Assembly: GCA_051530055.1 (NCBI GenBank)
Contig: CM121342.1
Location: 5,827,489 to 5,891,488, forward strand
Length of the DNA stretch: 64,000 bases
Direction: 5' to 3'
DNA from: Neoechinorhynchus agilis
Taxonomy: Eukaryota; Animalia; Acanthocephala
A model generated the notes under the pieces. The model searched no databases, was not told the origin of the DNA, and saw nothing but the letters and a program-made list of their open reading frames with translations. Shown here one piece after another: positions 1,780 to 44,079 of this stretch. Position 1 is the stretch's first letter. The number at the start of each line of letters is the position of its first letter. Made by a program: the position numbers and the translations under genes.

Positions 1780-3205
1780 ATGTCGCACATCAGATCCTCG
1801 GTTGCCTTGAATGATCAGAACCGGAAAAAACAAGCGATTCACATAACTCACGTTCACTCGCCGACATGGATATGTTTTCAGTCTTCTTTAAAAATGAATC
1901 ACATTTGGGCAGAATGCGAGCAAATGTATGCAATGTTCCGCTCAAACCGCCTAAAACGAACTGAACCTCGACTCGATAAGCGTCTCTATATCTTACCACT
2001 CACTGACATCACTCAATCAACACTAATGCATCGGATTATCGTAATGGCAATAATTGGCGATTGTCTCGTTGTTTACTATGTAGACCGAGGCATTTTTGGA
2101 ATCGCTGATGCTAAATCGGTTTACGTGTGTCCAGCAACAATCGCTAAGCATCCATGGTCTCTAAGAGCATTTGGAATCAGCCCATATAATTTAAAAAGTG
2201 CAAATAATGAACAGTTTGATATTGGCGACGAGTTAGAAGGTCGCGATTTTGAATTGCATTATGAGCCCGACGACAAAGATTACAAAGTCTACGACGGAAC
2301 TAATCGTTGTTTTATTGACTTCTATGACCATGATTCAATGGAGATTGGTTATAGTCGATTTAGTAGGCAGCATCGTAAGATCGGCGATTTCGTTTTGACT
2401 CATTTAAGAAACTATCCGGGTTTCCGATTCAAACGCCGTAATCCTTTGGTTTGCAAAATCACTCGAATAATCGAGGAAAGCGATCAGTTCGAACTTTTGC
2501 TTCTGGAAAGTATGAGGGTTCAAAGTACTTTTGTGGCTGTGGGCAAACACGAAGTATTTGATCGAATGGTTGGAAAGGAAGCTAGTTTACGAGACATATT
2601 TGTACCTTTAGGGACGTATCGTGTAGGGCAGAACTGTGCCATGTGGATCTTCTTCAAGGCACTCTTTTGCAATAAAAATAGTGAAGATTGATGACGATGA
2701 TGGGCAGGAGGATCTTGTCAGTTTCGTTGCTCATTCCGAGATGGACGTAATTCTGTTCCGTGTTATCAGTTTGCGATTGGCCCGTCAAATCGATGTTGTC
2801 ACAAGTTCAAAAATAGACCACCATCTTAATCCGTGTCCGACTTCTTTGCTAGCAGCGAATCTATACGAAAATGGACCGCTTATCCGATGCAGGATTATCG
2901 AGAGAAACGATAAAATGAGCAAAGTCTCTATTATTGACATGAACCACGAAGCTGATGTAAATGAATGCCATAGCTCCCCATTGTGGTCTTCTATGGTACC
3001 CATCTCGTTGGGGTCATTTTGTGATAGAATTGAGCCTTTGGCTAGAAGATGCTTTATAAAACGTAAAGATGCTGCAATATCTAAAGAACTTCTAAGACTA
3101 AAACTTGTGGACGATTGGGTCACTATTAAGGTACTCGCTATGGACGTAAACCTTAAAGGTGATTTAGAATATGAGGTTGTGCTCGAAAACAATGAGTTGA
3201 TGTGA
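1780..3205 (+). CDS. Tandem extended-Tudor domain protein 2 (TDRD-like, piRNA-pathway type)
   Basis: Two eTudor-like units: RIIVMAIIGDCLVVYYVDRG...HPWS and LIRCRIIE...VSIIDMN...VPISLGSFCDRIEP. ORFs 1780-2691 and 2636-3205 join in frame (459 codons) after removing 2626-2674. Confidence 0.65.
2624..2674 (+). other. TA-flanked hairpin intervening sequence (49 nt removed)
   Basis: TA at 2624-25 and 2673-74; arms GCAGAACTGTGCC / GGCACTCTTTTGC; the join gives YRV-KIVKIDDDD and fixes the frameshift. Confidence 0.75.
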
Positions 3206-3819: not shown

Positions 3820-5130
3820 TCTGGTGGGAATTGGTGTCTATTGCTTGCAGGAGCGCTTGTAAGGTCGATCTTTCCTCAGAATCATTTCAGGTTATGATAT
3901 CCGAGCGAAGGTTGGTCTTTCCTCAGAATCATTTCAGGTTATGATATCCGAGCGAAGGTTGGTCTTTCCTCAGAATCATTTCAGGTTATGATATCCGAGC
4001 GAAGGTTGGTCTTTCCTCAGAATCATTTCAGGTTATGATATCCGAGCGAAGGTTGGTCTTTCCTCAGAATCATTTCAGGTTATGATATCCGAGCGAAGGT
4101 TGGTCTTTCATCAGAATCATTTCAGGTTATGATATCCGAGCGAAGGTTGGTCTTTCCTCAGAATCATTTCAGGTTATGATATCCGAGCGAAGGTTGGTCT
4201 TTCCTCAGAATCATTTCAGGTTATGATATCCGAGCGAAGGTTGGTCTTTCCTCAGAATCATTTCAGGTTATGATATCCGAGCGAAGGTTGGTCTTTCATC
4301 AGAATCATTTCAGGTTATGATATCCGAGCGAAGGTTGGTCTTTCATCAGGTTCATTTCAAGTTATGATATCCGAACGAAGGTTGGTCTTTCCTCAGAATC
4401 ATTTCAGGTTATGATATCCGAGCGAAGGTTGGTCTTTCCTCAGAATCATTTCAGGTTACGATATCCGAGCGAAGGTTGGTCTTTCCTCAGAATCATTTCA
4501 GGTTATGATATCCGAGCGAAGGTTGGTCTTTCCTCAGAATCATTTCAGGTTATGATATCCGAGAGAAGGTTGAACAGCATGGAGAAAGGAGCGTAGATAT
4601 AGTGAGGTCATGGGAGGATGAAACGAATTAGGATTATGAGTGTTGTGCTCGTATATAAACACGTTTTATTAATTTAAGAAAAGAACGATCCATACACTTG
4701 CCAGCATCTATCTTTGCTTAAAGGTGTCTGAATGACGGATGTTGAAGGCAAGGGAGGTGGGACTTGTTTTTGAAGGAGTTTTAATGTGCGATCGAAGGCT
4801 TTGTAAAGGAGATGACCGATTGGGAGTCTTTACTTGTTCTCCGGTTATTAAGGAAATATTGGACTTGGGGGAGTTAAGGAACGGGAATAAAATGTGGTAG
4901 AAATTATGGTTCAAGGGTTGATAGGCGTTTTGATTGTTTTATGAACATAGCATCAATGCATTCGGTGAGAGGGGGAATGTAAGTTGTGCAAATTTTAGAT
5001 GCTCTTTTGTGAAGTGACGCTTTATGCGACGAACTATGCAATCTTTTTCGTTTCGAGTGCTTTGGACCGTTTGTTGAACACTTTATTGATCTTCAAAACA
5101 AAAATTCGGGCGTTTAAATTTGTAGATATT
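3820..5130 (-). pseudogene. Degraded member of an unidentified gene/repeat family (paralog at 20690-21390)
   Basis: The minus strand shares blocks with 20690-21390 (HKRASKICT vs RKRASKICT; THNPNSFH; LYxRSFxHA). It is interrupted by stops and by the 47-bp array. Confidence 0.45.
3869..4572. repeat. 47-bp minisatellite, about 15 copies
   Basis: Unit TCTTTCCTCAGAATCATTTCAGGTTATGATATCCGAGCGAAGGTTGG with starts at 3869, 3916 and so on; a variant copy lies near 4340-4385. Confidence 0.97.
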
Positions 5131-5530: not shown

Positions 5531-8500
5531 GCAAATGGGAATTTGCGCTTCGCCGTCACGATGCCACCACCGCCGTCCCCTCGCTTCGCTCGGGGACGGC
5601 CCACGCAAGGTGACGAATTAGCGACTACCCCGAAGTCACCGCCCAAAGCCAAGCAGTCAGACGATGGATCTAGCGACGGATTAGATTCACCTCCCAGTAC
5701 TATACCTCCAAGAAGGCTCAGGACGATCTCAGCATCGGATAGGTTTTGCAGAAATTCCAAACTACATCACAATGTGTTCAAATCGCCTACAATCGACGCT
5801 GGTGACGCAGATAATTTGAACGAGCTACTTATCGATCACGTGTAATCTGAGAAGACCAACGCTGCCGGGCTCCCACGCGTCTCTACTGGTTTGTGTCCGG
5901 TTTGCGGTAAGTTTTTTTTTAAATTAACAAATATGGGGGTTTTGTTTGTCCATGGTCCCCGAGATCTCCGCTGTAGTGGGTCTGGTTCTCCACCACAATT
6001 AACCGAACCGTTCGTGCCTGAGACCCCTCAGATCACCACTGATTCTATTTCGATACCTGATATCGTGCGGTTTCTGCCCAGGAACGTCCTGAAACGGATC
6101 CCCAAAGGCGCGCGATATCTGGTCGCCAAAGCATTTACGGGATTGCTCAATGATTGCCTGCAAACGAACTGTGCGCCTTCATGGACACGGCTCTTCGCTT
6201 TCCCGCGCTTAGTCCTCTGCACCAGCGGTGATTCTGGGGTGTCTTTGACATCAACAATCAAGGAAAGGTTAGATTCCTTTGAACAAATATTTAAAAATTT
6301 TGAAAGGAATCTCCGCGAGGTTTCTAAGGGACGCACGAAGGAAGAGTATCGCTGCCGTTTTTCAAAGCGATCACTGACTGAGCGTGTCTCTTCGAAGCTT
6401 GCGGACGGGGATGTTCGGGGGGCTGTTCGGTTATTGTCATCCTCCGACAGTTTCGCAAAAGGAGACAGCGAGACGCTACAAATACTCCGGTCGAAGCACC
6501 CATGTAGTAGCGGAAGCTTTGAAATTCCATCTCCTCCCATTCAGGACAGGACGCCCACTCAAATTTCAGAGATGAAAAAGGCCATCTCAACTTTTGCAAA
6601 TGGTTCGGGTCACGGGCTTGACGGACTAAGGCCTCAGCACTTAAAGGACATGATGTCCTTTTCAACTGGTGAAGCAGCTCTCTCTCTAGAAAGTGCGCTT
6701 TCTCGAATAGTCGACCGCCTGACTGGAGAGGACCTGAACCCCGTTGCAAAAGACCTATTTTTCGGAGCATCATTATGTGCTCTTACAAAAAAAGAAGGTG
6801 GGATTCGTCCCATCGCCGTATCTTCGACGATACGCCGACTTGCAGGAAAAATTCTCTGCAAACGTATTACAGAGAAAACCGGGCAGCAACTTCGTCCAGT
6901 CCAACTGGGCTGCTGCACATCCTGCGGGGCGGAAGCTATCGTCCACTCGCTCCGAAACTTTGCTACGAGTAGCTCAGCGCCGTGCGTGATTCTTAAGTGC
7001 GATTTTCGGAACGCCTTTAACTCTCTTAATAGAGAAAGCATGTTCCGCGCAATTAGGGATCACGCACCAGAAGCCTTCCAGTATTTTCTCAATGCCTACG
7101 GGACGGCGATTCCTTTGCTTTTCGAAGACCACCTCATTTGGTCCGAAAGAGGAGTGCAGCAAGGAGATCCCCTCGGTCCAATCGGATTCTCCCTAACAGT
7201 AAACCCAATAGCGCATTCTCTCCATTCCAGCTTCAACGCTTGGTACTTGGATGACGCTACGCTCGGAGGTAATCCCTCCGTTGTACTGCGCGATTTGGAG
7301 ACGCTGATTAGGGAGACCTCGAAGATGGGCATTGAGCTTAATGCTGGAAAATGTGAGCTCCTTGTACTGAATATTGGAGACGCCGCTAAAGTCAAAGAAC
7401 TAATGGCTGGGTTCGAGGCCGTAGCTCCAGGTCTGAAACTCGTGACTCGGGAACAACTCAGCTTCTTGGGCAGTTGTGTCTTCGATTCAAATGTGGAAGA
7501 TGAGATCGGCCATATCATACCGAAACTTTCGTTGCTGTGCGATAGGGTGTGCGCTCTCTCGGCTCATGAAGCCTTGTTTCTCATAAAGAACGCGCTCTTC
7601 ATCCCCAAATTATTGTGCAAGGTTCGCACAGCAACATTTTTCAAACACAAAAAAGGATTGGCAAAGCTCGACGACAAGGTGAGGGCTTGTCTCGAGCGTA
7701 TTTTAAATGTTCAGCTCTCAGATGAGGCGTGGCGACAAGCTTCTTTGCCTGTGTCGTCTGGGGGATTGGGAATTCGGGCGCTAGTCGACCTTGCTTTGCC
7801 GGCCTTTCTTGGATCGTTTGAGGGGAGCCTACCAGTCTCGAAGAACATTTTGAAAGAAAAGTTTTGTCTTGACCGGGATTTCGTGGTGGCGGTTGAGGAA
7901 TGGTGCCAGCATACAGGCGCTAACCATGTCCCAGTGAATGGCCTCAGACAGTCGATCTGGGACAGCCCTCTCGTCGCGAGAGCTCACAGCTCTCTACTTT
8001 CCGGTTCTCGCGATGGGGTCGTCCGAGCTAGACTGTTGGCAGTTTCGACACGAGAATCTGGGGCGTGGTTAGAGGCTGTTCCTCTGGCATCCGTGGGAAC
8101 TCTTCTTACTGACGAGGTAACGAGGATCACAGTGTCCTTAAGACTTGGTCTTGGGTCGACACGGTCTCGTTTGCCGAAAGTCAGGAGAAAGGTTTTCACG
8201 CCATTCTGAAATCAATAACGTAATTTCTCGGGCGTTGAGAACGGCGAACTTCCCGAACATCCTGGAACCCGCCCACCTCTGCAGACTAGACGGCCGTAGG
8301 CCCGATGGAATTTCGGTCTTTCCGTGGCGGGAGGGCAAATGCCTTCTCTGGGACGCCACGTGTGTGGACACCCTCGCAGCCAGCAACATCCCCTACTCCC
8401 TCGAAATCGCCGGTGGTGCCGCCAGTGCAGCGGAAGGGAGGAAGGTACGAAAATATATGCAGCTATCGAGGGCTCACTATTTTGTCCCCTTTGGGGTAGA

Positions 8501-8752
8501 GACGTATGGAGCGCTCGGCAGCTCGGCACTCTCTCTGCTCAAGGATCTCTCGAAGAAATTGAGAGAAGCAACCGGAGACTCAAGAGCAGGCTTATTTCTT
8601 CGACAAAATATCTCGCTGGCAGTACAACGGGGCAATGCTGCCAGCGTGATGGCGACGGTCGAGGAAGGACAAAAGCTGGAATTTGGTGGGAGGTGGTGAA
8701 TGTAAAGAAAAGTAACCAAATAGAAAAACTCTAAAAGTTGTATTTGATTGTT
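5531..8752 (+). mobile_element. Near-full-length CRE-clade non-LTR retrotransposon (RT + restriction-like endonuclease)
   Basis: N-terminal CPVCG...HGP...C zinc motif; RT motifs GGIRPIAV, DFRNAFNS, GVQQGDPLGP, WYLDD; RLE motifs RHSEINNVI, RPDG, WDAT, FVPFGVETYG, QRGNA. Ends are approximate; ATCAATAA occurs at both 5523-5530 and 8753-8760 (weak possible TSD). Confidence 0.92.
5561..8699 (+). pseudogene. Disrupted single ORF of the CRE element
   Basis: In-frame TAA at 5843-5845, and a frameshift/deletion near 8145-8155 between SLRLG and LGRHGLVC. Confidence 0.8.
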
Positions 8753-9408: not shown

Positions 9409-10048
9409 TTACATATTCTTAAGAGTCAAGCAATACTTGGCGGTTTTTTCGTACCAAAGATAGAAGGGCATTGCAGAACTCAGTGCAGCCAAAAGAGCAT
9501 AAATCACCAATTGAAATGAATGATTGCCGAATTGTCTTTTATATTCGACGAGCGGCATCGAATATATGAAGCCTGGCGATGAAGACAGGATTGTCTGTGA
9601 ACAAAAGATAGCAAAAACGAGAACCATCGGGAAAAAAGTGTCGAATACCTTTTCAGTTTCACGTTCAAAATAAGACAGAACACACGAACTAGCATTCAAG
9701 TATCCGGCTAATCTTGGTCTCACAATCGCTACGACGCTCACATTATCGTATCTGTTTTGTTGAAGGATTAAGAAAAAAAATTTTCTTTTGATTAACTTAC
9801 GATTCGATGGACTTCCATTGACCAAAGGGATTTGACACGAGATCAAAATCGGATTTGGGATACGATAGGAGATCGTCGAATCGAACGTCAGTGATCGGAT
9901 TTGGGCCTCGGTTGTACACGCCATACTTCACGGATAAATCGATTCCAATCGATGTTTGTTTGGTCAACAGAGATTTTGTGAAGAAAACATGTTCGCCGAT
10001 CACCGATGACGTCACTACGCCCAGAAACGAGACCACAAAAGCGAACAT
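9409..10048 (-). CDS. SSR2: Translocon-associated protein beta (TRAP-beta)
   Basis: Signal peptide, KSLL...DLSVKYGVYNRG, VRPRLAGYLN, C-terminal TM ending PFYLWY. Two GT-AG introns of 49 nt (9752-9800) and 54 nt; 179 codons after splicing. Confidence 0.88.
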
Positions 10049-12620: not shown

Positions 12621-12703
12621 ACATTACACCAGATCTAAAACGTCTTATATAAATTTCATTCTATTAAACCGATTACTTACGTTCTCGCAAAAAAACAATA
12701 TCA

Positions 12704-14229
12704 TAAATGGAATTATTTTTTTGTTTACAACAAAACGTTTCAACAATCACCACCGTCCACGAAGAAGAGGCATCGCACTCCCCTCTGTGATCGCGACCAC
12801 GCTCGCTGCGTTTCCTCTTTAGATCGCGAGACCAATATTTTGGCGCAGGAAGGCACCAGCTCTTGTATTTCCTGTCTTTTAGAAGTCTTCACCCGCGGTA
12901 AATAATTTTTTCGATCGAAGAAGTTCTGTGAACCTCCTCGGGTTCATCATCAGTTTATTACCCGACGAGGTTCGCAGAATATCTTTAATTGAAAAAAATC
13001 ATTTACCGCGGGTGAAGACTTGTAAACAACACAATTCCAATAACATTCCCCGGTACTTCCTCGCACATATCGACAATATCGTAAATGGAATTATTTTTTT
13101 GTTTACAACAAAACGTTTCAACAATCACCACCGTCCACGAAGAAGAGGCATCGCTCTTCCCTCAGTGATCGCGACCACGCTCGCTGCGTTTCCTCTTTAG
13201 ATCGCGAGACCAATATTTTGGCGCAGGAAGGCACCAGCTATTGTATTTCCTGTCTTTTAGAAGTCTTCACCCGCGGTAAATAATTTTTTCAATCGAAGAA
13301 GTTCTGTGAACCTCCTCGGGTTCATCATCAGTTTATTACCCGACGAGGTTCGCAGAATATCTTTAATTGAAAAAAATCATTTACCGCGGGTGAAGACTTG
13401 TAAACAACACAATTCCAATCACATTCCCCGGTACTTCCTCGCACATATCGACAATATCGTAAATGGAATTATTTTTTTGTTTACAACAAAACGTTTCAAC
13501 AATCACCACCGTCCACGAAGAAGAGGCATCGCTCTTCCCTCAGTGATCGCGACCACGCTCGCTGCGTTTCCTCTTTAGATCGCGAGACCAATATTTTGGC
13601 GCAGGAAGGCACCAGCTCTTGTATTTCCTGTCTTTTAGAAGTCTTCACCCGCGGTAAATAATTTTTTCAATCGAAGAAGTTCTGTGAACCTCCTCGGGTT
13701 CATCATCAGTTTATTACCCGACGAGGTTTGCAGAATATCTTTAATTGAAAAAAATCATTTACCGCGGGTGAAGACTTGTAAACAACACAATTCCAATAAC
13801 ATTCCCCGGTACTTCCTCGCACATATCGACAATATCGTAAATGGAATTATTTTTTTGTTTACAACAAAACGTTTCAACAATCACCACCGTCCACGAAGAA
13901 GAGGCATCGCACTCCCCTCTGTGATCGCGACCACGCTCGCTGCGTTTCCTCTTTAGATCGCGAGACCAATATTTTGGCGCAGGAAGGCACCAGCTCTTGT
14001 ATTTCCTGTCTTTTAGAAGTCTTCACCCGCGGTAAATAATTTTTTCGATCGAAGAAGTTCTGTGAACCTCCTCGGGTTCATCATCAGTTTATTACCCGAC
14101 GAGGTTTGCAGAATATCTTTAATTGAAAAAAATCATTTACCGCGGGTGAAGACTTGTAAACAACACAATTCCGATCACATTCCCCGGTACTTCCTGGCAC
14201 ATATCGACAATATCGTAAATGGAATTATT
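12704..14229. repeat. 378-bp tandem array, about 4 copies; unit = CRE 3' end (minus strand) + foldback MITE + spacer
   Basis: Period 378 (12747, 13125 and so on). The minus strand reads TGNTRAGAFLRQNIGLAI*RGNAASVVA...GRW*, matching the CRE C-terminus at about 8580-8699. Confidence 0.92.
12882..13022. mobile_element. Foldback MITE, family AAGTCT (one per 378-bp unit)
   Basis: AAGTCTTCACCCGCGGTAAAT...ATTTACCGCGGGTGAAGACTT inverted repeat with pairing continuing inward; TA lies 1 nt outside each arm. Confidence 0.8.
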
Positions 14230-14310
14230 GTTTAGAGAAAAAATCAGAGAGAGAGAAATAAGAAGCCAAAGGTAGAACGAGTTTATTTTCCAAACTAGCG
14301 TAGTGGGACG

Positions 14311-15458
14311 CTAAAAAGTGCACTGTGCTAGAGGGAAACTGGCGGCTGTTGCCACACCGCACATATTGTTTCGATTTCGCGCCATTTTGATATATCCCTC
14401 ATCTCCCCAAGTAGGTCCCCAACTGTTCTTAACAAGCCAATAAGGTTCACTGACTTCAGTTCCATTAACGAATGTTTTTTCTACGCCTGCTCCTACAATG
14501 AGTACTCCATGATCCAATGCTTCCGGTGAGCATTCTTCGTCTCTGTAGACTCCCGACCGATAAAACATGAATTCCGGCGACGAAGCATCGATTCCAATAG
14601 CGATTGGACCGTGTTTCTTAAGTGCTTGTAAGAGAGCATCTTCATCGCCTTCCGGAAGGATATCGACGAAGCTCACACAATTCGCGGCAACATTGGTTCG
14701 ATTGAATCGACACAGATCTTCCATGGTTTCATAAGGATAACTCTGTTCAGAGTCTATTCCTCGATTGTCAATCACGTATTGGAAGCAAAAATCCATGAGA
14801 CCTCCGTTACATCCATTATTTCCCCATGCCGACGAACAATCGAGTATCTGTTGTTCGCTTAAAACGGGAAGGTTGTGCCCAGCCAGGGCGTAGGCCGCTT
14901 CCAAAGCACCGGTAGCCGCAAATGAGTAACATGAACCACAATGTCCTTGATCTTTGACGGCAGTCACCACTCCACGTTTCCTATAGTCTATATTGACAAC
15001 ACGATTGGTCTCGTTCTCTTTCACGAAGGCGTCTCGTCGGAACATTCGTCTTGATCGCGATCGTTGTTGATCGCTATATCGAAGACCATTTAGAGTCGAT
15101 TTTATCATACTCGGACTTAGGTCAGAATATGCATGCAGTCCGAGTCTATAAGTTGATCTGGGATTTGAGTTGTGTTTGGCGACTAAATGGACGTTTTCTA
15201 CGAAGTTTTGGAGGCTATCGTTTTCTTCGTGGACGTAAGTGTACATCACCGGTCATTTTTTTTGAGAAAGCAAAAAATGATCACTGATTATGCTTTTTTG
15301 AACGACGATTTCCAAAACTTCCAAAGAGACGAAATTGCATCGTTGAACGTCAAATCACTGGTAGCCAATCGTTCATCGAGCTCAAGTGCTGTCTTATAGT
15401 CACGACTGGAACAACAGGTAAGAAGACCAAGAATTAAAAGACTAAATCTCAATACCAT
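14311..15458 (-). CDS. CTSL: Cathepsin L-like papain-family cysteine protease (signal peptide, I29 propeptide, C1A domain)
   Basis: QGHCGSCYSF, CNGGLM, LDHGVL and YWLVKNSWG motifs; 367 codons after removing 47 nt TA-to-TA. Confidence 0.93.
15242..15290 (-). other. TA-flanked hairpin intervening sequence (47 nt removed)
   Basis: Sense strand: GCA-TA-ATCAGTGATCATTTTTT...AAAAAAAATGACCGGTGAT-G-TA-C. The join gives KKAYTYVHEE; I found no in-frame GT-AG option. Confidence 0.88.
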
Positions 15459-17126: not shown

Positions 17127-20100
17127 ATGAACACATTGAACCGTTTGCTCGACCAACTCAGTATATCTGAGAAAAGTTTGCCTGGACATGAAATTGGTTC
17201 GAATCATCGTAAAAAGCAGCTTCTCTCGTTCGCTCATTGCTTTGAACAACCTCAATTCGATTATTGGACACGGTCGAGTCAACGAGAGCAGCAGAGTGGT
17301 CGAGTGACTCAAAAGATCGGAAATAACTTGATAATCGATTACTGTTACATCGTCGATCTCCGGGACGTTCAATTCGAGACCAAAGAACACATTTCAATCG
17401 GAACTCATGTGCGATACTCACTAAAGAATGGTGGTCGTATTGTTCAAAATGTGACTAAAGTGACCAAAGACGCGAAGAATCGTATGGATGAAGATGGAGG
17501 TTGGTTGAGGCAACAAATGTCTCAACATGGTGGAGGCGGTTACGTAGGTTGTGTTAGTCGCTTTGACGGGTTTCAAGGCAAAATCGACGAAGCGATCAAC
17601 TTTGATCGATCGAATTTACTCGATTGGTGCTATGAGCCCTGTGTTCACGATTGGGTCACTTGTGTGCCTGAGAACGATGATGAACTAAAAAAAGAAGTGA
17701 AGTTTAAGGTGAAACCGAACCGAATTATCCAGATTAGTGGACCGTACCATAAACGAAGGACACGTTATGCATTCGTTGGCAACGTCGTCCACATCGACAC
17801 TGAACTCATCGATGTCAGTTTTATCAGAGAAGGTGATGTGCTTTTCGTAATCGGGGTCGAATCCAGCGTTTTTGAACAGGGATGGAGAGCTGTTGGATTG
17901 TGTAAAATTGTAACGGAAAATGTAGAAGAGAACGTAATTGGTCGTCTGGTTGTAAAAGGATGCGATGGTATCATCGAAACAAGAGGTTATCTCTACTGTA
18001 ACTTCGAACGAACTCAATGTTCAGTCAAAATGAACATCGTAACCGTGAGTGCGCCCAGTTGTCGATTTCTAACACCATGCACCAAATCACCATTTCTTTC
18101 TATCCAATTTTTTGTGGGCGTTTTACTACCGAGTAATCGATATTTTTCGAAATATCAGTCTGACAGGATTCACCAACGTACAATCAAATTCACCCCGAGG
18201 ATGTTGACTTTGAGCTTTCAATTCTTTTCAACTTTGTGGCACACTCACGAGAAGAAGGCAAAGGACACGTGAAGATAACAAAGATCAGTCTTTCTAATAG
18301 TTCAGGACCGTTCATCGTGCGTTCAGTGCTATTAAACAACAATCCGATCACTCAATACCCATTTACACTACGAGCAGCCGTCGACGAAGAGCTGAAGATT
18401 TTGGTTGATTCCAAAACCAAGTTTGATTTTAACATTTCTGAGCTTCAAATTCACCTGAAGACGAGCGAATCGACGTACGTTTGGAAGAAGATTTTAGTTT
18501 TTCAGAACGATTTTACAGCGAGTTCATTTGTGTTTCAGTCGTTTACATGTTATATTCGAGGCAAGGATGAATGGAGGCGGTACACTCAAAGTGGTCACCG
18601 AGCTCGATCACATCTCAGGTGTAGAATCAATAAGACGGACGTTGCTCACCGACAACTCCATTTTGAAGAATCTAATACTCACGAGAAACCCCCAAATGAC
18701 CTTAAAGATTTGATGATGAGCACGACTTTTAGTTCACGCGTCCTCGCCCAATTTTATCCTTATCTTCAACACAATCTAAACTGGATTCATTATGACCGAA
18801 CTTTGCATACTCTTTTACATCTTGAACAAATTACAGTTGAGATGCATGCATTTCAAAGTCCTAGTCATGGTGTAGTGTTCAAAGAAGAACGACAGCGACT
18901 TTTATCGTTCATATGGCCGTTTTCTGAAGATCAACTTGTTTCGGTTATGATTAACGACAAAATAGTGGCCGACGAAACCTTTGAAGGATTCATCCATAAA
19001 GTGGTTGATGACAAAGTTTTTGTCAAATTCGATGTTCAATTCTTCAATAGTGTTGTTGGACCGAGGACTAGTTCAATGGCAACAACAAAACGGTTCAAAA
19101 TAAGACACATTCCAGATACCAGCGTGTTTCGTAGGTGCCATCATGCCATATCGTACATCAAGAATGAACGGGAATTTGAACATATTCTGTTTCCTCGTTT
19201 AAGTCAATGTGTCCAATTGAACACGTCTCAGTGTAAACATAACGAGCCTATAAATGGACAGCTTAACGAAATGCAGAGGTTAGCGGTTGAAGGCATATTG
19301 CGATGGTCAAATGTTCATCCCGAACTTCCATCACCTCCTTTGTTACTTTTTGGTCCACCAGGAACGGGAAAAACGGTCACACTCGTTGAAGCTATAACTC
19401 AAGTCTATAAAATGTCAACACTAACGAAAATCCTTGCTTGTGCGCCATCGAACGCGGCATCCGACCTTATTTGCGAACGGATTCTGTCCACGACTCATAT
19501 ACCACAATCTCAAATTGCCAGAATTTACGCTCAATCTAGGAATGTGGACGATATTCCCTCGTCGTTATTACAAGTCAAAGTTCATCAACAAGACATTGAA
19601 CCTTTTTTGAGACGGCGAGTGATTGTAGTAACGTTCTCAACGGCGTCTCAACTTATTTATCAAAGCGGACGAATTCCCGACTTTACTCATTTGTTTCTGG
19701 ACGAATGTGCACAAGCGACTGAACCTGAAGCACTTATACCTCTTCGGGTAGCTGGTGGCAAGGGGCGTATTATTGTGCTGGCCGGAGATCCATGTCAACT
19801 TGGAAGTGTGATCAAATGTAAAGAAGCATCAGAGTTTGGATTAAACCGTTCTTTAATGCAACGTCTTATGGATCAGTGTCCGGACGTGTACTCGGACGAA
19901 CGGGGCTATTTCTTCACTCTGAACAATACATACCGATTTAGTTATCCATGTCTCATTCAAACGCCATCGAGGATGTTCTATAAAGACAGATTAGTGGCCG
20001 TGAGAAATAATTATGTTGATTCTCTTAACATCGACGATAATCGAGTAAAGAAAACATTTCCAAGAGGACTTGATTTCCCACTTATGTTTGTTCAAGTACC

Positions 20101-22362: not shown

Positions 22363-23700
22363 GAGACGGATCGTTCGTGAGAGAGCGTGAAAACACAACT
22401 GGATTAATCCTCAATAGAGAAAATCCTTCGGGTTAATCAAAGTTTATAATTTTGGTGAAAATACTCCCCCGGTAATAACCTATTTGATTTATTGGAGAAG
22501 TTTCAACTGGAGACGGATCGTTCGTGAGAGAGCCTGAAAACACAACTGGATTAATCCTCAATAGAGAAAACCTTCGGGTTAATCAAAGTTTATAATTTTG
22601 GTGAAAATACTCCCCGGTAATAACCTATTTGATTTATTGGAGAAGTTTCAACTGGAGACGGATCGTTCGTGAGAGAGCCTGAAAACACAACTGGATTAAT
22701 CCTCAATAGAGAAAATCCTTCGGGTTAATCAAAGTTTATAATTTTGGTGAAAATACTCCCCCGGTAATAACCTATTTGATTTATTGGAGAAGTTTTCTCA
22801 ACTGGAGACGGATCGTTCGTGAGAGAGCCTGAAAACACAAATGGATTAATCCTCAATAGAGAAAATCCTTCGGGTTAATCAAAGTTTATAATTTTGGTGA
22901 AAATACTCCCCCGGTAATAACCTATTTGATTTATTGGAGAAGTTTCAACTGGAGACGGATCGTTCGTGAGAGAGCCTGAAAACACAAATGGATTAATCCT
23001 CAATAGAGAAAATCCTTCGGGTTAATCAAAGTTTATAATTTTGGTGAAAATACTCCCCCGGTAATAACCTATTTGATTTATTGGAGAAGTTTCAACTGGA
23101 GACGGATCGTTCGTGAGAGAGCCTGAAAACACAAATGGATTAATCCTCAATAGAGAAAATCCTTCGGGTTAATCAAAGTTTATAATTTTGGTGAAAATAC
23201 TCCCCCGGTAATAACCTATTTGATTTATTGGAGAAGTTTCAACTGAGACGGATCGTTCGTGAGAGAGCCTGAAAACACAAATGGATTAACCTCAAAGAGA
23301 AATCCTTCGGTTAATCGTTTATAATTTGTGAAAATTCGTAATAACCTATTTGATTTATTGGAGAAGTTTCAACTGGAGACGGATCGTTCGTGAGAGAGCC
23401 TGAAAACACAAATGGATTAATCCTCAATAGAGAAAATCCTTCGGGTTAATCAAAGTTTATAATTTTGGTGAAAATACTCCCCCGGTAATAACCTATTTGA
23501 TTTATTGGAGAAGTTTCTCTCAACTGGAGACGGATCGTTCGTGAAGCCTGAAAACACAACTGGATTAATCCTCAATAGAGAAAATCCTCCGGGTTAATCA
23601 AAGTTTATAATTTTGGTGAAAATACTCCCCCGGTAATAGCCTATTTGATTTATTGGAGAAGTTTCAAATGGAGACGGATCGTTCGTGAGAGAGAGCGTGA
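22363..23700. repeat. About 147-bp tandem array, about 9 copies
   Basis: GAGACGGATCGTTCGTGA starts at 22363, 22510, 22655, 22805, 22952, 23099, 23245, 23376, 23527 and 23671. Confidence 0.97.
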
Positions 23701-23773: not shown

Positions 23774-26700
23774 ATGGTTGAAGATCGTTCATTGTTGTTG
23801 AAGAATGTTCGTCGATGTTTGGCTAATGTTCTCTATCGAGTTAGTCGGAAAGTAGACAAACATCATCGTGTTTCGGTTGTCAATGACCCGGAGGAGGAAT
23901 CAGTGGCGATTAAACGGATTCGCCAAGATCCATATTATTATCTCGGTGATGGTCTTCGCCGCGTTCATCCTTATAAGTTCACATGGAAGACGTTTGCTAA
24001 AAGGAGATGGATCGGCCGGACGCTCATTGATGTTTATTCAAATGAGTTTGCTTATTTGGCAAGTGATGATACAAAAACTGAACAAGTCCGTGAAATGATT
24101 GAAACCGGAAAAATTCGAGTTAATGGACAGGTTAAAAGTTGTGAGTATGTTGTACACACGATCGAACCCATCGATTCCTATCGTGGACAAAAGAAAATGT
24201 GAATCGATGGGTTCTTAAGGGATAATGATCAGCTGACCAATGACGATCATAGGCATGAAAAACCCGTTCTGGACGCAGAAATCACAATTTGTAAAGAAAA
24301 TGATCAATATCTTGTTATTTGTAAACCAAGTTCAATACCAGTTCATCCTTGTGGAAATTATCGTTTCAATACGGTGACCAACATTCTTGAACATGAACAA
24401 GGACGAACTAACCTTAAACTGGTACATCGATTAGCTCAAAAGTGATCGGGTTTGAGGCTTTTCTCCAACGGTTACAAATGCCCATCCATCGGTGTCCTCT
24501 CCATGATCTCTAACGCATTGTTCTCCTTCTTAACTTTGCTTCAAAAAAAATGATTCACTCATCTAAATCGTTAATTTTTATCGTATTATTTTGAGAGCTT
24601 AAATTAAAGAAATGAAATTGGAATTAATTAAAGCAAATTTGATTAATGGGATATTAATCATTTCTCCAGAGAATCATACTCTCTTCTAGGCCGTAGATCC
24701 ATTTTCCGTCATTTCCTTTTGTTTTTAAATTCGGTTTTTTTTGAAGCCACATTCGGAAATGAATTATGCCTTCTCGATGATCTCTAACACATTGTTCTCC
24801 TTATCTTTGCTTCAAAAAAATGATTCACTCATCTAAATCGTTAATTTTTATCGTATTATTTTGAGAGCTTAAATTAAAGAAATGAAATTGGAATTAATTA
24901 AAGCAAATTTGATTAATGGGATATTAATCATTTCTCCTTTTAATCAATACTCTCTTCTAGGCTGTAGATCCATTTTCCGTCATTTCCTTTTGTTTTTAAA
25001 TTCGGTTTTTTTTGAAGCCACATTCGGAAATGAATTATGCCTTCTCGATGATCTCTAACACATTGTTCTCCTTATCTTTGCTTCAAAAAAATGATTCACT
25101 CATCTAAATCGTTAATTTTTATCGTATTATTTTGAGAGCTTAAATTAAAGAAATGAAATTGGAATTAATTAAAGCAAATTTGATTAATGGGATATTAATC
25201 ATTTCTCCATTTAATCAATACTCTCTTCTAGGCCGTAGATCCATTTTCCGTCATTTTCTTTTGTTTTTAAATTCGGTTTTTTTTGAAGCCACATTCGGAA
25301 ATGAATTATGCCTTCTCGATGATCTCTAACACATTGTTCTCCTTCTTATCTTTGCTTCAAAAAAATGATTCACTCATCTAAATCGTTAATTTTCATCGTA
25401 TTATTTTGAGAGCTAAATTAAAGAAATGAAATTGGAATTAATTAAAGCAAATTTGATTAATGGGATATTAATCATTTCTCCTTTTATTCAATACTCTCTT
25501 CTAGGCCGTAGATCCATTTTCCGTCATTTCCTTTTGTTTTTAAATTCGGTTTTTTTGAAGCCACATTCGGAAATGAATTATGCCTTCTCGATGATCTCTA
25601 ACACATTGTTCTCCTTATCTTTGCTTCAAAAAAAATGATTCACTCATCTAAATCGTTAATTTTTATCGTATTATTTTGAGAGCTTAAATTAAAGAAATGA
25701 AATTGGAATTAATTAAAGCAAATTTGATTAATGGGATATTAATCATTTCTCCTTTTAATCAATACTCTCTTCTAGGCCGTAGATCCATTTTCCGTCATTT
25801 TCTTTTGTTTTTAAATTCGGTTTTTTTGAAGCCACATTCGGAAATGAATTATGCCTTCTCCATGATCTCTAACGATTGTTCTCCTTATCTTTGCTTCAAA
25901 AAAATGATTCACTCATCTAAATCGTTAATTTTTATCGTATTATTTTGAGAGCTTAAATTAAAGAAATGAAATTGGAATTAATTAAAGCAAATTTGATTAA
26001 TGGGATATTAATCATTTCTCCTTTTATTCAATACTCTCTTCTAGGCCGTAGATCCATTTTCCGTCATTTCCTTTTGTTTTTAAATTCGGTTTTTTTGAAG
26101 CCACATTCGGAAATGAATTATGCCTTCTCCATGATCTCTAACACATTGTTCTCCTTATCTTTGCTTCAAAAAAATGATTCACTCATCTAAATCGTTAATT
26201 TTTATCGTATTATTTTGAGAGCTTAAATTAAAGAAATGAAATTGGAATTAATTTAGCAAATTTGATTAATGGGATATTAATCATTTCTCCTTTTATTCAA
26301 TACTCTCTTCTAGGCGCTAGATCCATTTTCCGTCATTTCCTTTTGTTTTTAAATTCGGTTTTTTTGAAGCCACATTCGGAAATGAATTATGCCTTCTCCA
26401 TGATCTCTAACACAGCTCCTCCTTATTCTAGTTTTCCAAAAAAATGATTCGGCCTCATCGGAATCGTTAATTTTTATCGTATTATTTTGAGAGCTTAAAT
26501 TAAAGAAATGAAATTGGAATTAATTAAAGCAAATTTGATTAATGGGATATTAATCATTTCTCCTTTTAATCAATACTCTCTTCTAGGCCGTAGATCCATT
26601 TTCCGTCATTTCCTTTTGTTTTTAAATTCGGTTTTTTTGAAGCCACATTCGGAAATGAATTATGCCTTCTCATGATCTCTAACACATTGTTCTCCTTATC

Positions 26701-28287
26701 TTTGCTTCAAAAAAATGATTCACTCATCTAAATCGTTAATTTTTATCGTATTATTTTGAGAGCTTAAATTAAAGAAATGAAATTGGAATTAATTAAAGCA
26801 AATTTGATTAATGGGATATTAATCATTTCTCCTTTTATTCAATACTCTCTTCTAGGCCGTAGATCCATTTTCCGTCATTTCCTTTTGTTTTTAAATTCGG
26901 TTTTTTTTAAGCCACATTCGGAAATGAATTATGCCTTCTCCATGATCTCTAACACATTGTTCTCCTTCTTAACTTTGTTATATTATTAATCCTTTTCATT
27001 TTTTTTAAACAATAAAAGATTTATTTTAAAATGATTAAATCGTCCCCCGGACGCTGACCGCATTTCCTCGTTGGATTGCGAGGCTTATTCTTTGTATCAG
27101 GAAAATCCTCTCGCGTCGCTCCCCTGTTAATCTTTCTCCTATGGATTCACTGCTTTCAAAAACCCAATGATTCACCCATCTAAATCGTTAATTTTAATCA
27201 TTTTGGAATTACTGTTTAAAGTCTTACTAAAAAATGATGATGAACCGCCGGTGAAGTTCGACGAACGTCTTTTTAATCGAAGACTTCTAACCAATAATTT
27301 CTTTGCACATTCCCCAATTTTTAAATCCTATTTTTTTGAATGTATTTTGAGAGCTTAAATTAAAGAAGAAGGGAAATAAAAGAGAAAAAAGTCGGATATC
27401 TTCACGAATTAATGCTATTTTCGACTCATTTTTCTAATATGTTGTCGAAAAAATTAATATTTATTGAACTCATGAAAGACGACATTTAAGATACTTATAA
27501 AGTCGGATACTCGTGATGGATTTCTGAGCTTATCTTCTTTTTTTGGTGTCGAATAAGACAAAATTAGTTCGGAAATATGGCCACCTTCGAAGGGATCACT
27601 TTTAGTTTAGACAGATGCACCAGTGGACTAATGATACTTGCCAAATCATCGAATGCGGCTACTTTGATTCAGAAACTATTTAACGATGGGAAAATCCGGA
27701 AAACTTATTTGGCAAAAGTGACTCATATTCCGATTCAATTCGATAGCGAACAAATCGTTAGTGTGGACAAGCGAGTTGCCGTAATCTCCTATAAACACGC
27801 TCTATGTCGAATAATAAACGAAGATTTAAGTGAGCGAGGAAAATCAGCTGTAACCTTATTTGAGGTCTTTGATCGCGAGAAAAGAATACTCAGTTGTAAG
27901 CCTATCAGCGGTCGAATGCATCAGATCAGACTTCATCTTCAATACCTCGGATGTCCAATAGTTGACGACAATGTGTACAACAATGTTCGAATATGGAAAT
28001 CCGATTTTTCGCAGAAAGACGAGGAAGTTATTGCCAATTTAGTGGAAGAACGAAAAAGATTGATTTTGGAAGCCACCTTATTAAATCAGGAGGGCAAAAC
28101 GGAATTAGCCGTGGATGCAGCTCATTTCGACGAAACGTGTAAAGAATGCAAATATCCATCGGCGGATCCTCGTCGGTCTCAAATGTCCATTTGTCTTCAT
28201 TCATATGAATTAGAAGTGGACGGTGAAAAGTACGTCTCGGATCTTCCACAATGGGCTCTGAGGTTTTGTTCTTATACACAAGATTAA
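23774..28287 (+). CDS. RPUSD2: RluA-family pseudouridine synthase
   Basis: GLRRVHPY.F...AKRRW.GR, HRHEKPV, KPSSIPVHPCG, HRLDRCTSG and GRMHQIRLHLQYLG motifs. 425 codons after removing two TA-to-TA segments (63 and 3176 nt). Confidence 0.9.
24153..24217 (+). other. TA-flanked hairpin intervening sequence (63 nt removed)
   Basis: Perfect 14-bp inverted repeat GAACCCATCGATTC (24164-77) / GAATCGATGGGTTC (24201-14); contains an in-frame TGA; the join gives CEYVVRDND. Confidence 0.72.
24432..27609 (+). other. Large TA-flanked intervening sequence with terminal stem (3176 nt removed)
   Basis: CAT CGA TTA G|...|AC AGA restores HRLDR; terminal arms AAAAGTGATC (24438-47) / GATCACTTTT (27594-603). Confidence 0.85.
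24499..26970. repeat. About 270-bp tandem array, about 9 copies, inside the RPUSD2 intervening sequence
   Basis: ATGAAATTGGAATTAATT recurs at about 270-bp spacing (e.g. 25426, 25697, 25966). Confidence 0.97.
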
Positions 28288-33127: not shown

Positions 33128-33314
33128 TATGTGGCGGTTGGGGAAAAATTATATATCAAAGACTTTAATTAAAATATTTCGTCCAATCAAACAGAACTCG
33201 ATCACTATGAATTATTGTTTGTAAGTGTTTTTCAACTGTGAAAAATCCATTGCGATTGGTCGAAATATTTTAATTAAAGTCTTTGATATAAATTTTTTTC
33301 CCAACCGCCATATA
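33128..33314. mobile_element. TA-bounded foldback MITE, with a truncated tandem copy at 33343-33493
   Basis: TATGTGGCGGTTGGGGAAAAATT...AATATTTCG / CGAAATATT...TTTTTCCCAACCGCCATATA; arms of about 60 bp. Confidence 0.82.
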
Positions 33315-33594
33315 CACAATTTTTAGTTAAAAATATAATGAGTATGTGGCGGTTGGGGAAAAAATTATATATCAAAGACTTTAATTAAAATATTTCGACC
33401 AATCAAACAAAACTCATCACTATGAATTATTGTTTGTAAGTGTTTTTCAACTGTGAAAAATCCATTGCGATTGGTCGAAATATTTTAATTAAAGTGATCA
33501 CAATTTTTACCGTGAAAGAAATCGACAAAATTCTTTGTTATCTAGAGAGAAAAAAAGTGTCAATCATTTTCTATTGGCTTTAACACTTCTACTA

Positions 33595-34326
33595 ATGGTG
33601 GACAATGAAACTTATTTGCCTTCTTACAAAGAATTGGAGTTTCCAACTCTTAACGTCACTTCGGCAGTTCTTCGTGCCGGAGCTCATTTAATGGCCCTAA
33701 AATGTGACGAAGTCTTTAAGGTTAATCGCACTTTTCAAACAAATTTCTAATGATTTAGCGAATAATTGATTAATTTGAAAAAAATCAATAATTCGCTATC
33801 AGTATAAAAAAAATCATTTCAATTTTTCTACATGCCATTTCAAAACAACTTTAAGGAATTCATGCTTTGTCGCCAAGAACTGGATGGTAGATTTTGTCTT
33901 AAGGAAGGAAAAGACGTTAGTCAATGCGCGATGGATTTCTTTAAATCAGTCCGAAACAATTGTAATGAAAGTTTTGTCGACTATTGGAAATGTCTTGATA
34001 ATTCCCCCGATGGTGAATTCAATTATTTATAGTAAGATTTTAATGAAGAAAAACACATCCCCAAGAACTCGTTTCCGACTTTTAGCTGCAAAAAAACTCA
34101 AAAACAGTTCGAACTGTGCGCTTCTGAGAAATTGAAATTAGATCGACCGCCAGTTGGATACTTTAACATGATCCGAGTTCATAAAACAAAACGGGAAAAA
34201 CCAAAAGTTGGAGAGTTCATGTTTCCTTTCAAAGAACTCGATGAGCCGCCACTTTTGGAAAACCAGGAACGATTTAAAAATGCTAAAATTGAAGCCGAAA
34301 AAGGACGTCGTGTCTTTTGGAAGTAA
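33595..34326 (+). CDS. NDUFA8: NADH dehydrogenase 1 alpha subcomplex subunit 8
   Basis: LPSYKELE...LRAGAH...C...EFMLCR...CLKEGKDVSQC...C...F..YWKC...CKKTQKQFELC...LDRP; twin CX9C pattern; two GT-AG introns. Confidence 0.92.
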
Positions 34327-40775: not shown

Positions 40776-41182
40776 AATTTTATTATCTAATTTGAAAAGT
40801 TGGATATCCATTTTTTAATCTTAGGAAAATTTGTCGAGAACCGCGAACCTCTATTTATTTCAATTAACTCTAACTGGTCATCTTCGTTTGTTGCAAATAA
40901 AAAGAATAACGGAAAAATTAAAATCACATGGAAAACCATATGAATTTTCAGAAATCAAAGCCGCCTACCGATTATAGACATTTAACTCAAGCTACAAAGC
41001 AATCTTGAATGCTGATTGGACAATCCGATAGAAGTCGCCGATAGCAATTAACTTGGCGAATCAGAATGCAAGATTTTGTGACACGTGGCAAAAACTAGTT
41101 GACTTAGTGAACGCGTTCACTTCTATTTGATTTAACTTTTACTCCTGTTGATTCTACTTGTCTTCTCCTTCAAAAAATTGAA

Positions 41183-42463: not shown

Positions 42464-44079
42464 TTGGCCGAAATGAAGGCAGACTATCGATTTATGAGAT
42501 CGATGACGTTAAGGAGCCGATCAAGATGCCCGAAATGGGCCAAGCAGAGATTGTCTTGTGTTAGACAAAAATGTCGAAACCATTTTATCAATCGAAGAAC
42601 CTTTCTTTGTGAAAGAGATGCAAATAATCCAAAAGAAGAAGCGTTCTCGTCGTTGACGAGAAATGGAAATTCAATGTGTTTAGTCGTAAAGAAAAGTTCG
42701 ACTGGTGTTCTATGGATAACTGTTCGCTTATTTGTAAATCAATAAAAAAATCATCGCTTCCTCTTTTCTCTTTAAAGGCACGGGAATCATAAAACAAAAT
42801 ATTTTTCACTCGTAAACGAATAAAATAAATTTTTTTTCATGATTCTATATTTTATTAATAGTTCGGATTCTTAATAGCGGCCATTGGCAGCTTTTTTTAA
42901 TTTCGATTTGTTAAGATCATAATTTCTTCAATGACGGAGATTTGGGAAAATTGGGTTATTGCCGATGCCGTCACTTGTAAATATCACCGCTTAGAACGTT
43001 GGGATTTTATAACTTTCACCAAAACTCCATTCGACAATTATTTTAAGAACTGATGGAGCAGATTATTTGAGATTTAAAACAAAATAATTCTTAAAGTTAA
43101 ATGTCTCGTAAATAAGTGCCTTTTACACGATATTTTTTTCTACCGCCGAAATTTAAAGCACAAAACTTTAAAATTGTATTTTTTGCTGTATTTTATAGAT
43201 TTTTCAATTATTTAAAAAAAATTCAGTTATGAAATCGCATTCAAGCGTCAGTTTTCGTTTAACGATTGGAAACGAAAAATTTTACCTGCAATAATTAAAA
43301 TTTTAATTGTTGCGCTAAGATGAAATGTCACTTGCAGAGATCTCATCAAAAATGTTGCGTAACGTAAATTTATACGTGTTCAAAATTCAAAACTTTAATT
43401 GAAATTTTTTATTTTGATAATGACATAAATTTTACAAATTGTTTGGTCGTCAATAGCTTCAAAATTGCAGAAATATTTTTTTCTGATTTTCGAATATCTT
43501 TTATTTTCAAAATTGCGGGTGTCGATAGGTGTAATTCTAAAGCCTTTTATTATAAAGAACATTTAAGGAAAAAATCGTGAAAATTAATTTAAAAAATTAA
43601 AGTATTAATGGTAATTTTACGTGGCTGTTACGGGTTTTTAATTTGGCAGCGACTTAAAATTATCTTTTGTCAGGTTCAAATTTTTTCTTTATTCCAAAAA
43701 ATACAGTTATAAAAAACAAAAAGGAAATTTGTCGAGAACCGCGAACCTCTATTTATTTCAATTAACTCTAACTGGTCATCTTCGTTTGTTGCAAATAAAA
43801 AAATAATGGAAAAATTAAAATCACATGGAAAACCATATGAATTTTCAGAAATCAAAGCCGCCTACCGATTATAGACATTTAACTCAAGCTACAAAGCAAT
43901 CTTGAATGCTGATTGGACAATCCGATAGAAGTCGCCGATAGCAATTAACTTGGCGAATCAGAATGCAAGATTTTGTGACACGTGACAAAAACTAGTTGAC
44001 TTAGTGAACGCGTTCACTTCTATTTGATTTAACTTTTACTCCTGTTGATTCTACTTGTCTTCTCCTTCAAAAAATTGAA

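Follow-up and report, generated by a model that had tools for sequence, protein, structure and literature searches.

A TA-bounded, hairpin-forming insert in a cathepsin L gene and its likely exact removal without GT-AG signals

Introduction

How can a cathepsin L gene yield its protease when the reading frame runs into a stop codon within the propeptide, and the segment that separates this stop from the rest of the frame lacks the ends of an ordinary intron? The question is raised by a locus that is present in one assembly of Neoechinorhynchus agilis, GCA_051530055.1, on the minus strand of a 64,000-nucleotide (nt) stretch of the chromosome record CM121342.1 (16.4 Mb); this whole stretch is hereafter called the window. 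We conclude that what interrupts the frame is a miniature Tc1/mariner-style inverted-repeat element located within an exon, and we put at about 60% the probability that it is such an insert excised exactly, without GT...AG signals, and most likely from the transcript. At least five elements with the same TA-bounded hairpin anatomy interrupt conserved genes in the window, and the number probably is seven.

Results

The cathepsin L junction

The first cathepsin L exon (15289-15458, minus strand), as delimited by its open reading frame (ORF) and by BLASTP comparison with P0002, the nearest relative found (75% identity over the mature enzyme), starts with the ATG at 15458-15456 and ends in ...AAA GCA TA. 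Its translation, MVLRFSLLILGLLTCCSSRDYK...SLWKFWKSSFKKA, begins with an N-terminus, MVLRFSLLILGLLTCC..., that by inspection resembles a signal peptide, and reaches ~11 residues into the I29 propeptide before the frame meets TAA at 15290-15288, the GCA-TAA stop described in an earlier account of this locus made from the DNA letters (the sequence-only reading). The second exon (14311-15241, minus strand) encodes the rest of the I29 propeptide and the papain-family protease domain and ends with TAG at 14313-14311; the downstream ORF, with its partial propeptide and the papain domain, extends from 14311 to 15249. The insert between the two ORFs reads TAATCAGTGATCATTTTTTGCTTTCTCAAAAAAAATGACCGGTGATGTA. 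It lies within a TA...TA segment (15242-15290, minus strand) the two TA copies of which, at 15290/89 and 15243/42, are spaced 47 nt apart, so that what has to be removed is a 45-nt core (15244-15288) together with one TA copy. This core folds into a single hairpin, as had been noticed from the letters, with a minimum free energy of -12.2 kcal/mol (z = -3.40; none of 200 dinucleotide shuffles as stable).

Excision of 47 nt, at any position within the 2-nt ambiguity that the TA repeat leaves, gives AAA GCA TAC ACT TAC GTC, that is, K A Y T Y V; the predicted messenger RNA (mRNA) junction is AAAGCATA|CACTTAC and the peptide is FKKA|Y|TYVHEE. The product FKKAYTYVHEE, which the sequence-only reading had derived from TA-to-TA removal, restores the frame and aligns without a gap across the junction with P0002, the corresponding stretch of which is LWNNYKNLFGKSYENAEEE; this alignment starts at residue 32, and its first gap comes 29 residues past the junction (SSLWKFWKSSFKKAYTYVHEENDSLQNFVENVHLVAKHN versus ENLWNNYKNLFGKSYENAEEEGKRLLDFEANTHRIYDHN). 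The assignment of this stretch to the I29 propeptide is likewise borne out by the Pfam profile, which matches the joined protein along positions 1-56 (40.5 bits, starting at residue 46) versus only 16-56 (32.0 bits) for the protein that starts at the downstream ATG. Among five forms of the cathepsin, scored as fragments, the TA-to-TA product has the highest I29 score, with the others reaching 38.0, 32.0, 29.5 and 28.2 bits. The public gene call P0001 (311 amino acids) begins at ATG 15246, within the 3' arm of the hairpin, and omits exon 1.

Could the gene instead be spliced in the ordinary manner at other junctions, such as GT(15303)-AG(15215) or AT(15291)-AC(15239), with the TA repeat and the hairpin being incidental? 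The 3' end of the segment, ...GATGTA, reads ...GGTGATGTA|C and contains no AG, in agreement with the sequence-only reading; the sole AG of the segment (15285-84) lies 5 nt inside its 5' end and is followed downstream by the next one at 15226-25. The accompanying claim that no in-frame GT-AG pair exists was mistaken: enumeration of the pairs that restore the full ORF yields 31 GT-AG, in addition to GC-AG, GA-AG, GG-AG and AT-AC, and other genes in the window do use canonical introns. However, the closest GT-AG pair (GT 15303...AG 15215, 89 nt) deletes FKKAYTYVHEENDS, 14 conserved residues, and brings the I29 score down to 28.2 bits; at least as many conserved residues are lost with the other GT-AG options, and colinearity with P0002 is broken. 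The exclusion of a GT-AG acceptor therefore stands on homology and the I29 score, and not on a want of in-frame pairs. The 53-nt AT-AC option, which costs two further residues and at 38.0 bits comes near the score of the TA-to-TA product, is disfavoured mainly by the lack of an AT-AC pair at any other element in the window; by eye, neither the carboxypeptidase nor the BMS1 element described below shows a comparable pair in its flanks. The cathepsin segment does not resemble a U2-type intron, in that GT or GC and AG termini are lacking, as are a pyrimidine tract and a branch site, the 3' third being, by eye, A-rich and then GACCGGTGATG. Nor does it resemble a U12-type intron, given that the 5' end at AT(15291) reads ATAATCAG versus the consensus ATATCCTT.

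Recurrence in conserved genes

Further elements were sought where long ORFs of conserved genes abut within the window. The second one, in a carboxypeptidase D-like gene (55619-55667, plus strand), extends from TA 55619/20 to TA 55666/67 and forms a hairpin (z = -3.17). The removed length, 47 nt, equals that in cathepsin L, as had been pointed out before, but the description of the two inserts as unrelated was too strong: TA-nnCAnnGATYAT is found on both arms of the cathepsin, carboxypeptidase and BMS1 inserts. Removal joins QLAIHL|ASSFYSNDRD; in PDB alignments with the fly and duck CPD, QLAIHL|ASSFYSNDRDICHLL shows one 1-residue gap, and the other frame-restoring removals considered (29 or 32 nt) would add 5-6 residues. 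The third element, in BMS1 (39607-39689, plus strand), comprises 81 nt (TA 39607/08 to 39688/89) in frame with a TGA and has 10-bp perfect arms inside a 30-bp stem (z = -6.05); the join GGLNSL|ESG aligns without gaps with human BMS1 (7mq9).

Two elements interrupt an RPUSD2-like pseudouridine synthase gene. The smaller of these, the fourth (24153-24217, plus strand), comprises 63 nt (TA 24153/54 to 24216/17), again in frame with a TGA, and has 14-bp perfect arms (z = -3.97). In a MAFFT alignment with 25 homologs, the TA-to-TA product, with the join CEYVV|RDNDQL, is colinear with 24, which are all those that reach this stretch, whereas the one alternative tested, a 51-nt removal, adds four residues that are found in none of the aligned homologs. 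The fifth element (24432-27609, plus strand; TA 24432/33 to TA 27608/09) is 3,176 nt long and carries terminal inverted repeats (..AAAAGTGATC..), its ends, TA-GCTCAAAAGTGATC... and ...GATCACTTTTAGTT-TA, being predicted to pair. The join KLVHRL|DRCTSG recreates the catalytic HRLDRxTSG motif in register with 25 of the 25 homologs aligned by MAFFT, whereas the available GT-AG pair would add four residues, LAQN, inside the HRLD motif. A 269-bp unit, repeated about nine times at 24498-26967 (plus strand), fills most of this element, which accordingly appears to be a carrier of satellite-like DNA rather than of a transposase gene.

Two further cases are probable. In a LAMTOR1-like gene, for which the homology is weak (E about 0.05), a TA...TA segment at 61023-61077 (minus strand; 53 nt) forms a hairpin, and its removal would join DRAWFY|EHQLGIL. 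In an unnamed gene, a 49-nt TA...TA segment at 2624-2674 (plus strand) also forms a hairpin (z = -2.76); a GT-AG reading (2621-2681, 61 nt) is in frame, too, with no homologs to choose between the two.

With four additional cases checked by homology and these two probable ones, the core of the sequence-only reading, namely, an intervening segment without a normal AG acceptor that is removed from TA to TA, folds into a hairpin and belongs to a recurrent class, is upheld. We regard the anatomy of the elements, their recurrence and the need for TA-to-TA removal as demonstrated. The colinearity of the BMS1 and pseudouridine synthase products with homologs, together with the residues that other junctions would lose in cathepsin and add in the pseudouridine synthase, makes ordinary splicing at different junctions very unlikely.

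The lengths of the seven elements are 47, 47, 49, 53, 63, 81 and 3,176 nt. If retained in the mRNA, each of the verified ones would introduce a stop or a frameshift. One might suppose that the genes simply are broken, either by recent, unremoved transposon hits that created null or pseudogene alleles, with the cathepsin being made from ATG 15246 without a signal peptide, or by errors of assembly. The public gene call for cathepsin does start at that downstream ATG. Against this, five to seven conserved genes, among them the essential BMS1, would have been hit within 64 kb, and yet the frames on either side of the elements are fully open; exon 1 of the cathepsin gene supplies the apparent signal peptide and the missing start of I29; the insert in HRLD would kill the enzyme, yet the remainder of the pseudouridine synthase gene is intact; and target-site duplications with inverted-repeat ends are unlike sequencing artefacts. 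We consider gene disruption or misassembly highly improbable.

Another way to pass the stop would be translational bypass, whereby the ribosome hops over the hairpin, as it does in T4 gene 60 or in the byps of Magnusiomyces mitochondria. The arrangement in cathepsin L, a stop where the ribosome would take off, then a hairpin and ~47-50 nt to be skipped, does resemble that of T4 gene 60. However, the take-off codon would be GCA versus ATG before the resumption codon, with only 2 nt (TA) repeated, and the 3,176-nt member of the class is far too long for hopping; to our knowledge, translational bypass has not been described for nuclear genes. This explanation is extremely improbable.

Functional proteins are obtained only if each element is excised along with one TA copy, so that the organism must remove these elements precisely, efficiently and without GT...AG signals. 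In keeping with this, public gene calls are truncated or fragmented at the cathepsin (P0001), BMS1 (P0121) and large pseudouridine synthase (P0361) elements.

Ordinary introns in the same window

Five ordinary introns were placed in the window. Three are on the minus strand with GT...AG ends: 9752-9800 (GTAAGT...ACAG, 49 nt), in a gene that we take to be TRAP-beta-like; 51164-51213 (GTATAT...TTAAG, 50 nt); and 51513-51659 (GTGAGT...TTTTAG, 147 nt). A fourth, at 18045-18166 on the plus strand (GTGAGT...GACAG, 122 nt), reproduces the 1,111-residue public gene call of a helicase. The fifth, at 50974-51022 on the minus strand (GC...CCAG, 49 nt), is a GC-AG intron, and one in five would be a high share if these introns are representative. 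No significant hairpin was detected in the ordinary introns of the window (z from -1.4 to +1.6). Their presence without such folds indicates that a normal spliceosome and normal introns exist in this organism, and that the TA-hairpin elements, which account for about half of the intervening sequences placed in the window, are a distinct second class. In contrast to the TTTCAG and TTTTAG ends of canonical introns, no pyrimidine tract is common to the seven elements.

Shared anatomy and transposon character

Each of the five verified elements lies between the two copies of a TA direct repeat and has pairing arms, and the four small ones among them are single hairpins over nearly the full length, with none of 200 shuffles being as stable in each case. 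The ends are similar in three elements (TAATCAGTGATCAT / TACATCACCGGTCAT, TAAATCATGGATCAT / TATGACATGGATCAT and TACACATTGATTAT / TAACCAATGATTAT); in the whole window, TA-nnCAnnGATYAT has 41 matches versus 32 expected, which is not a significant over-representation. A TA target-site duplication combined with terminal inverted repeats is the mark of non-autonomous elements of the Tc1/mariner type, and this is the arrangement of a Tc1/mariner-type miniature inverted-repeat transposable element (MITE) that is observed here. Of the ORFs and matches examined in the window, none represented a transposase gene, but no search was aimed at transposases.

Larger TA-flanked palindromic elements abound in the non-coding DNA of the window (33128-33314, 38019-38215, 49950-50105, 52781-52867, 53085-53278 and 57358-57452); small ones are present as well (33756-33798 and 43612-43662). 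Among direct repeats that flank inverted-repeat-bounded segments, TA is the most enriched, at 3.45 per 1,000 pairs versus 0.5-2.6 for other dinucleotides. In the element at 53085-53278 (plus strand), the 12 bases beyond the TAs are mutually reverse complementary (caactttactct / agagtaaagttg), so that the palindrome reaches past the apparent target-site duplication.

A strong local hairpin (-17 kcal/mol) is also present within the helicase ORF, at 19603-19654 (plus strand), where it encodes LRRRVIVVTFSTAS. We take this one to be real coding sequence, given that by eye it represents a conserved helicase motif, and it cautions against calling elements from hairpins alone. A control scan of hairpins that merge ORFs, across all 16 flanking dinucleotides, proved too noisy to serve as a statistic, owing to a GC-rich retrotransposon and to extended palindromes. 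Comparison of the two copies of a 2.9-kb duplication (see below) revealed no element that is present in one copy but missing from the other.

The strand on which pairing is more stable bears on the level at which the elements are removed. In five of the six small elements, the hairpin of the sense strand exceeds that of the antisense strand in stability (differences of -1.8, -4.9, -6.8, -5.9 and -5.7 kcal/mol), and G.U pairs in the small elements number 14 on the sense strand versus 4 on the antisense strand. Such stability and G.U bias would be expected from selection on the transcript and, in this small sample, hint at the RNA level.

Host affinities and other features of the window

The proteins encoded in the window are animal-like. 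The best named match of BMS1 is from a bdelloid rotifer (56% identity) and that of the pseudouridine synthase from the acanthocephalan Pomphorhynchus laevis (36%, E = 8e-30 versus 5e-26 for the next); for cathepsin L and a retrotransposon, the best named matches are from arthropods. The protein searches yielded no close relative; matches to insects were at ~49% identity and those to arthropod retrotransposons at ~40%. The carboxypeptidase D of the fly scores 317 bits versus 262-275 for vertebrate ones, which argues against a tunicate. On their own, these matches point, weakly, to a protostome of a sparsely sampled lineage, perhaps close to Syndermata, and make a tunicate or a ciliate unlikely. 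A metagenome scan returned nothing above 47% identity. A match to Fritillaria was rejected on the grounds that its splice rules do not fit and that about half of the intervening sequences are canonical. A ciliate germline is disfavoured by the animal-like proteins, by the ordinary introns and by the stop codons, with TAG ending the cathepsin ORF and TGA interrupting frames.

Much of the remaining window consists of repeats. A non-LTR (long terminal repeat) retrotransposon at 5891-8699 (plus strand), with a reverse transcriptase and, by eye, a C-terminal restriction-enzyme-like endonuclease region, has a frameshift near 8145-8209; it shares only ~40% identity with CRE/SLACS-like elements from Lepidoptera, a barnacle and a tardigrade. 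An array of four 378-bp units (12695-14233), each with a 143-nt TA-flanked palindrome, immediately follows the 3' end of the cathepsin gene. From the end of the first long BMS1 exon, a 142-bp unit is repeated six times (37041-37876, plus strand), and the ORF runs out into this array; for the long BMS1 intron (about 37.0-38.8 kb, ~1.7 kb), the ends could not be placed, and neither inverted repeats nor a conserved protein were found there. The 2.9-kb segmental duplication (40900-43850 and 43797-46750, about 86% identical) encodes in each copy a repeat protein rich in lysine and glutamate (ORFs at 41183-42463 and 44080-45358, the latter with a frameshift) and carries an antisense ORF of 166 amino acids; these ORFs have no Pfam matches. 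The array at 46608-48041 (247 bp, 5.6 copies), the translation of which repeats WNPATSGFELAIERTLNALV, may be built from a unit that is related to transfer RNA (tRNA) and similar to short interspersed nuclear elements; ARAGORN detected no tRNA in it. Further tandem arrays are located at 3861-4572 (47 bp, 15 copies), 22363-23693 (147 bp, 9 copies) and 61715-63995 (224 bp, 10 copies). Scans of the window against Rfam and for tRNAs gave no match; at a relaxed threshold, the only Rfam match, at 33276-33382 (plus strand), is to MIR7127, a plant microRNA precursor family, with 35 bits versus a gathering score of 100, and almost certainly is just a hairpin repeat, that is, a palindromic unit.

Discussion

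Exact removal of the elements could, in principle, take place in DNA or in RNA. The first possibility is programmed DNA elimination, in which internal eliminated sequences (IESs) are retained in the germline and excised at TA from somatic DNA, the assembly representing germline or unrearranged DNA. The elements conform exactly to the pattern of the ciliate IESs of Paramecium, Euplotes or Blepharisma (PMC8354472, PMC9942856), in that they have TA...TA boundaries and inverted-repeat ends, range from ~47 nt to kilobases, and lie in exons, including those of an essential gene and one catalytic motif; moreover, each of them carries a stop or breaks the frame. However, the proteins are opisthokont in character, with no ciliate among the named matches listed; the window contains ordinary introns of 49-147 nt that begin with GTAAGT or GTGAGT; the stops are standard, as seen in cathepsin L and in the TGA-interrupted frames; the element ends differ from the Paramecium TAYAGYNR consensus; an assembly from a whole animal would normally reflect somatic DNA; and the G.U bias of the sense strand is better suited to RNA. 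We know of no animal that removes small exonic IESs, which also counts against this possibility, and, on balance, it seems doubtful. The most radical form of the idea, an animal with ciliate-like editing, in which thousands of TA-bounded, transposon-derived exonic segments reside in the germline and are precisely excised from somatic DNA, is unlikely. A less radical version would hold if removal occurs in RNA: a cut-and-ligate system that is genome-wide, guided by hairpins and independent of the spliceosome, and that acts on mRNA with exactness.

That removal occurs at the RNA level, and by which enzymes, we infer from several considerations. The RNA route is favoured because the proteins are animal-like and ordinary introns are present; because an assembly of a whole organism usually represents somatic DNA; because the differing ends of the elements are better suited to recognition of structure than to a sequence-specific transposase; and because the sense-strand hairpins are the more stable ones and are richer in G.U pairs. 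Speculatively, pairing of the arms in the transcript would place the two UA sites next to each other where the stem begins, whereupon the segment would be cut out after UA on both sides and the exons would be ligated, which would give exactly the product that the homologs call for. Candidates for the machinery include a relaxed spliceosome, as in Fritillaria, and a pathway combining an endonuclease with an RNA ligase, similar to SOS splicing. A tRNA endonuclease acting on a bulge-helix-bulge fold was rejected by reasoning alone, as both junctions are at the same level of the stem and not staggered across a 4-bp helix.

Several observations weigh against removal from the transcript by a machinery of this kind. 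Protein searches for this species returned only the truncated gene calls of the window itself, and no transcript, complementary DNA or peptide. The elements show no shared 5' site, branch point or pyrimidine tract. The asymmetry between the sense and antisense strands could come from a mutation bias linked to transcription. Precise excision bounded by TA is otherwise a hallmark of DNA elimination in ciliates. The ends of the elements break the Fritillaria rules on YAY triplets, AG/AC or AG/AT termini and the penultimate A. Finally, SOS splicing in its described form lacks precision and produces indels (PMC12779559), whereas the cuts needed here are exact and, in one case, fall within a catalytic motif.

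If a density of seven elements per 64 kb holds genome-wide, a large share of the genes in this organism would be unreadable by normal gene finders; and, if the pattern holds, the organism would depend on precise, structure-guided removal of transposon-derived inserts.

Comparison with known systems

In the literature searched, no account of TA-bounded hairpin inserts within animal genes came to light, but four known systems share parts of this anatomy. The TA-bounded IESs of ciliates (Paramecium, Euplotes and Blepharisma) are excised from DNA in protists with dimorphic nuclei; they have TA at both ends with one copy kept, derive from Tc1/mariner elements or MITEs, range from tens of nt to kilobases, and have massively colonised coding exons, such that precise removal is needed (PMC8354472, PMC9942856). 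In the window, TA is likewise found at both boundaries, with one copy left after removal, at five junctions. In contrast, this window is animal-like, with rotifer, acanthocephalan and arthropod best named matches, ordinary introns, standard stops and no TAYAGYNR end consensus.

The nonconventional introns of euglenids have a pairing motif, CAG at positions +4 to +6 and CTG at -8 to -6 (PMC11282704, PMC12501133). Like the elements described here, they lack fixed terminal dinucleotides, have short direct repeats at the junctions and paired ends, are suspected to originate from MITEs and coexist with conventional introns. However, the CAG/CTG motif is not shared, and the host, with ~38% G+C and animal-like proteins, is not a euglenid.

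Another parallel is SOS splicing, which operates in C. elegans and human cells, where pairing of terminal inverted repeats triggers spliceosome-independent, RTCB-dependent excision of exonic DNA transposons, with AKAP17A, CAAP1 and RTCB as the factors involved (PMC12779559). Both systems concern exonic elements of the Tc1/mariner type (TA) without GU-AG sites, with inverted-repeat pairing that in the present case is predicted; the small elements form the exonic, pairing structures that SOS splicing acts on (predicted sense hairpins, z from -3.2 to -6.05). SOS splicing works on elements with or without internal sequence (PMC12779559). The difference is that SOS splicing uses several sites and leaves indels, and that exonic insertions in C. 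elegans are rare and purged (PMC12779559), whereas here exact removal is required of seven elements in 64 kb that are fixed in conserved genes. If the pattern holds across the genome, this organism would provide a natural system for the study of how SOS-type or relaxed spliceosomal excision becomes exact and which nuclease cuts. It would also allow the study of how such a removal system lets DNA transposons colonise coding sequence, a question that is shared with the ciliate IESs.

A further parallel is the larvacean Fritillaria borealis, in which the spliceosome precisely removes non-canonical introns that derive from MITEs (Henriet et al. 2019; PMC13326754; PMC11282704); most of these introns have AG/AC or AG/AT ends, with one YAY triplet preceding the 5' site and another at the 3' end, 88% have the penultimate A, and only ~5% are canonical (PMC13326754, PMC11282704). 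In both organisms, coding sequence is broken up by short segments of transposon origin that have inverted-repeat ends and target-site duplications, lack GT-AG ends and yet are removed exactly (as homology requires here), and standard gene finders fail. An origin from an inverted-repeat transposon with a target-site duplication is apparent in all five verified elements. The termini differ, however: in this window, the repeat is TA, the ends share no dinucleotide, and GT-AG or GC-AG introns make up about half of the intervening sequences. Applied to the cathepsin segment, the Fritillaria terminus rules leave the TAA stop in frame; the TA repeat allows three placements of the ends, and with none of them is the penultimate A consistent in all seven elements. 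Thus, the rule that applies here, a TA duplication plus a hairpin and exact removal, differs from the Fritillaria rule, but the kind of phenomenon is already known, namely, transposon-derived intervening sequences that bypass GT-AG; if true, this would be a second, independent case of an animal in which transposons are tolerated as 'introns' without GT-AG signals.

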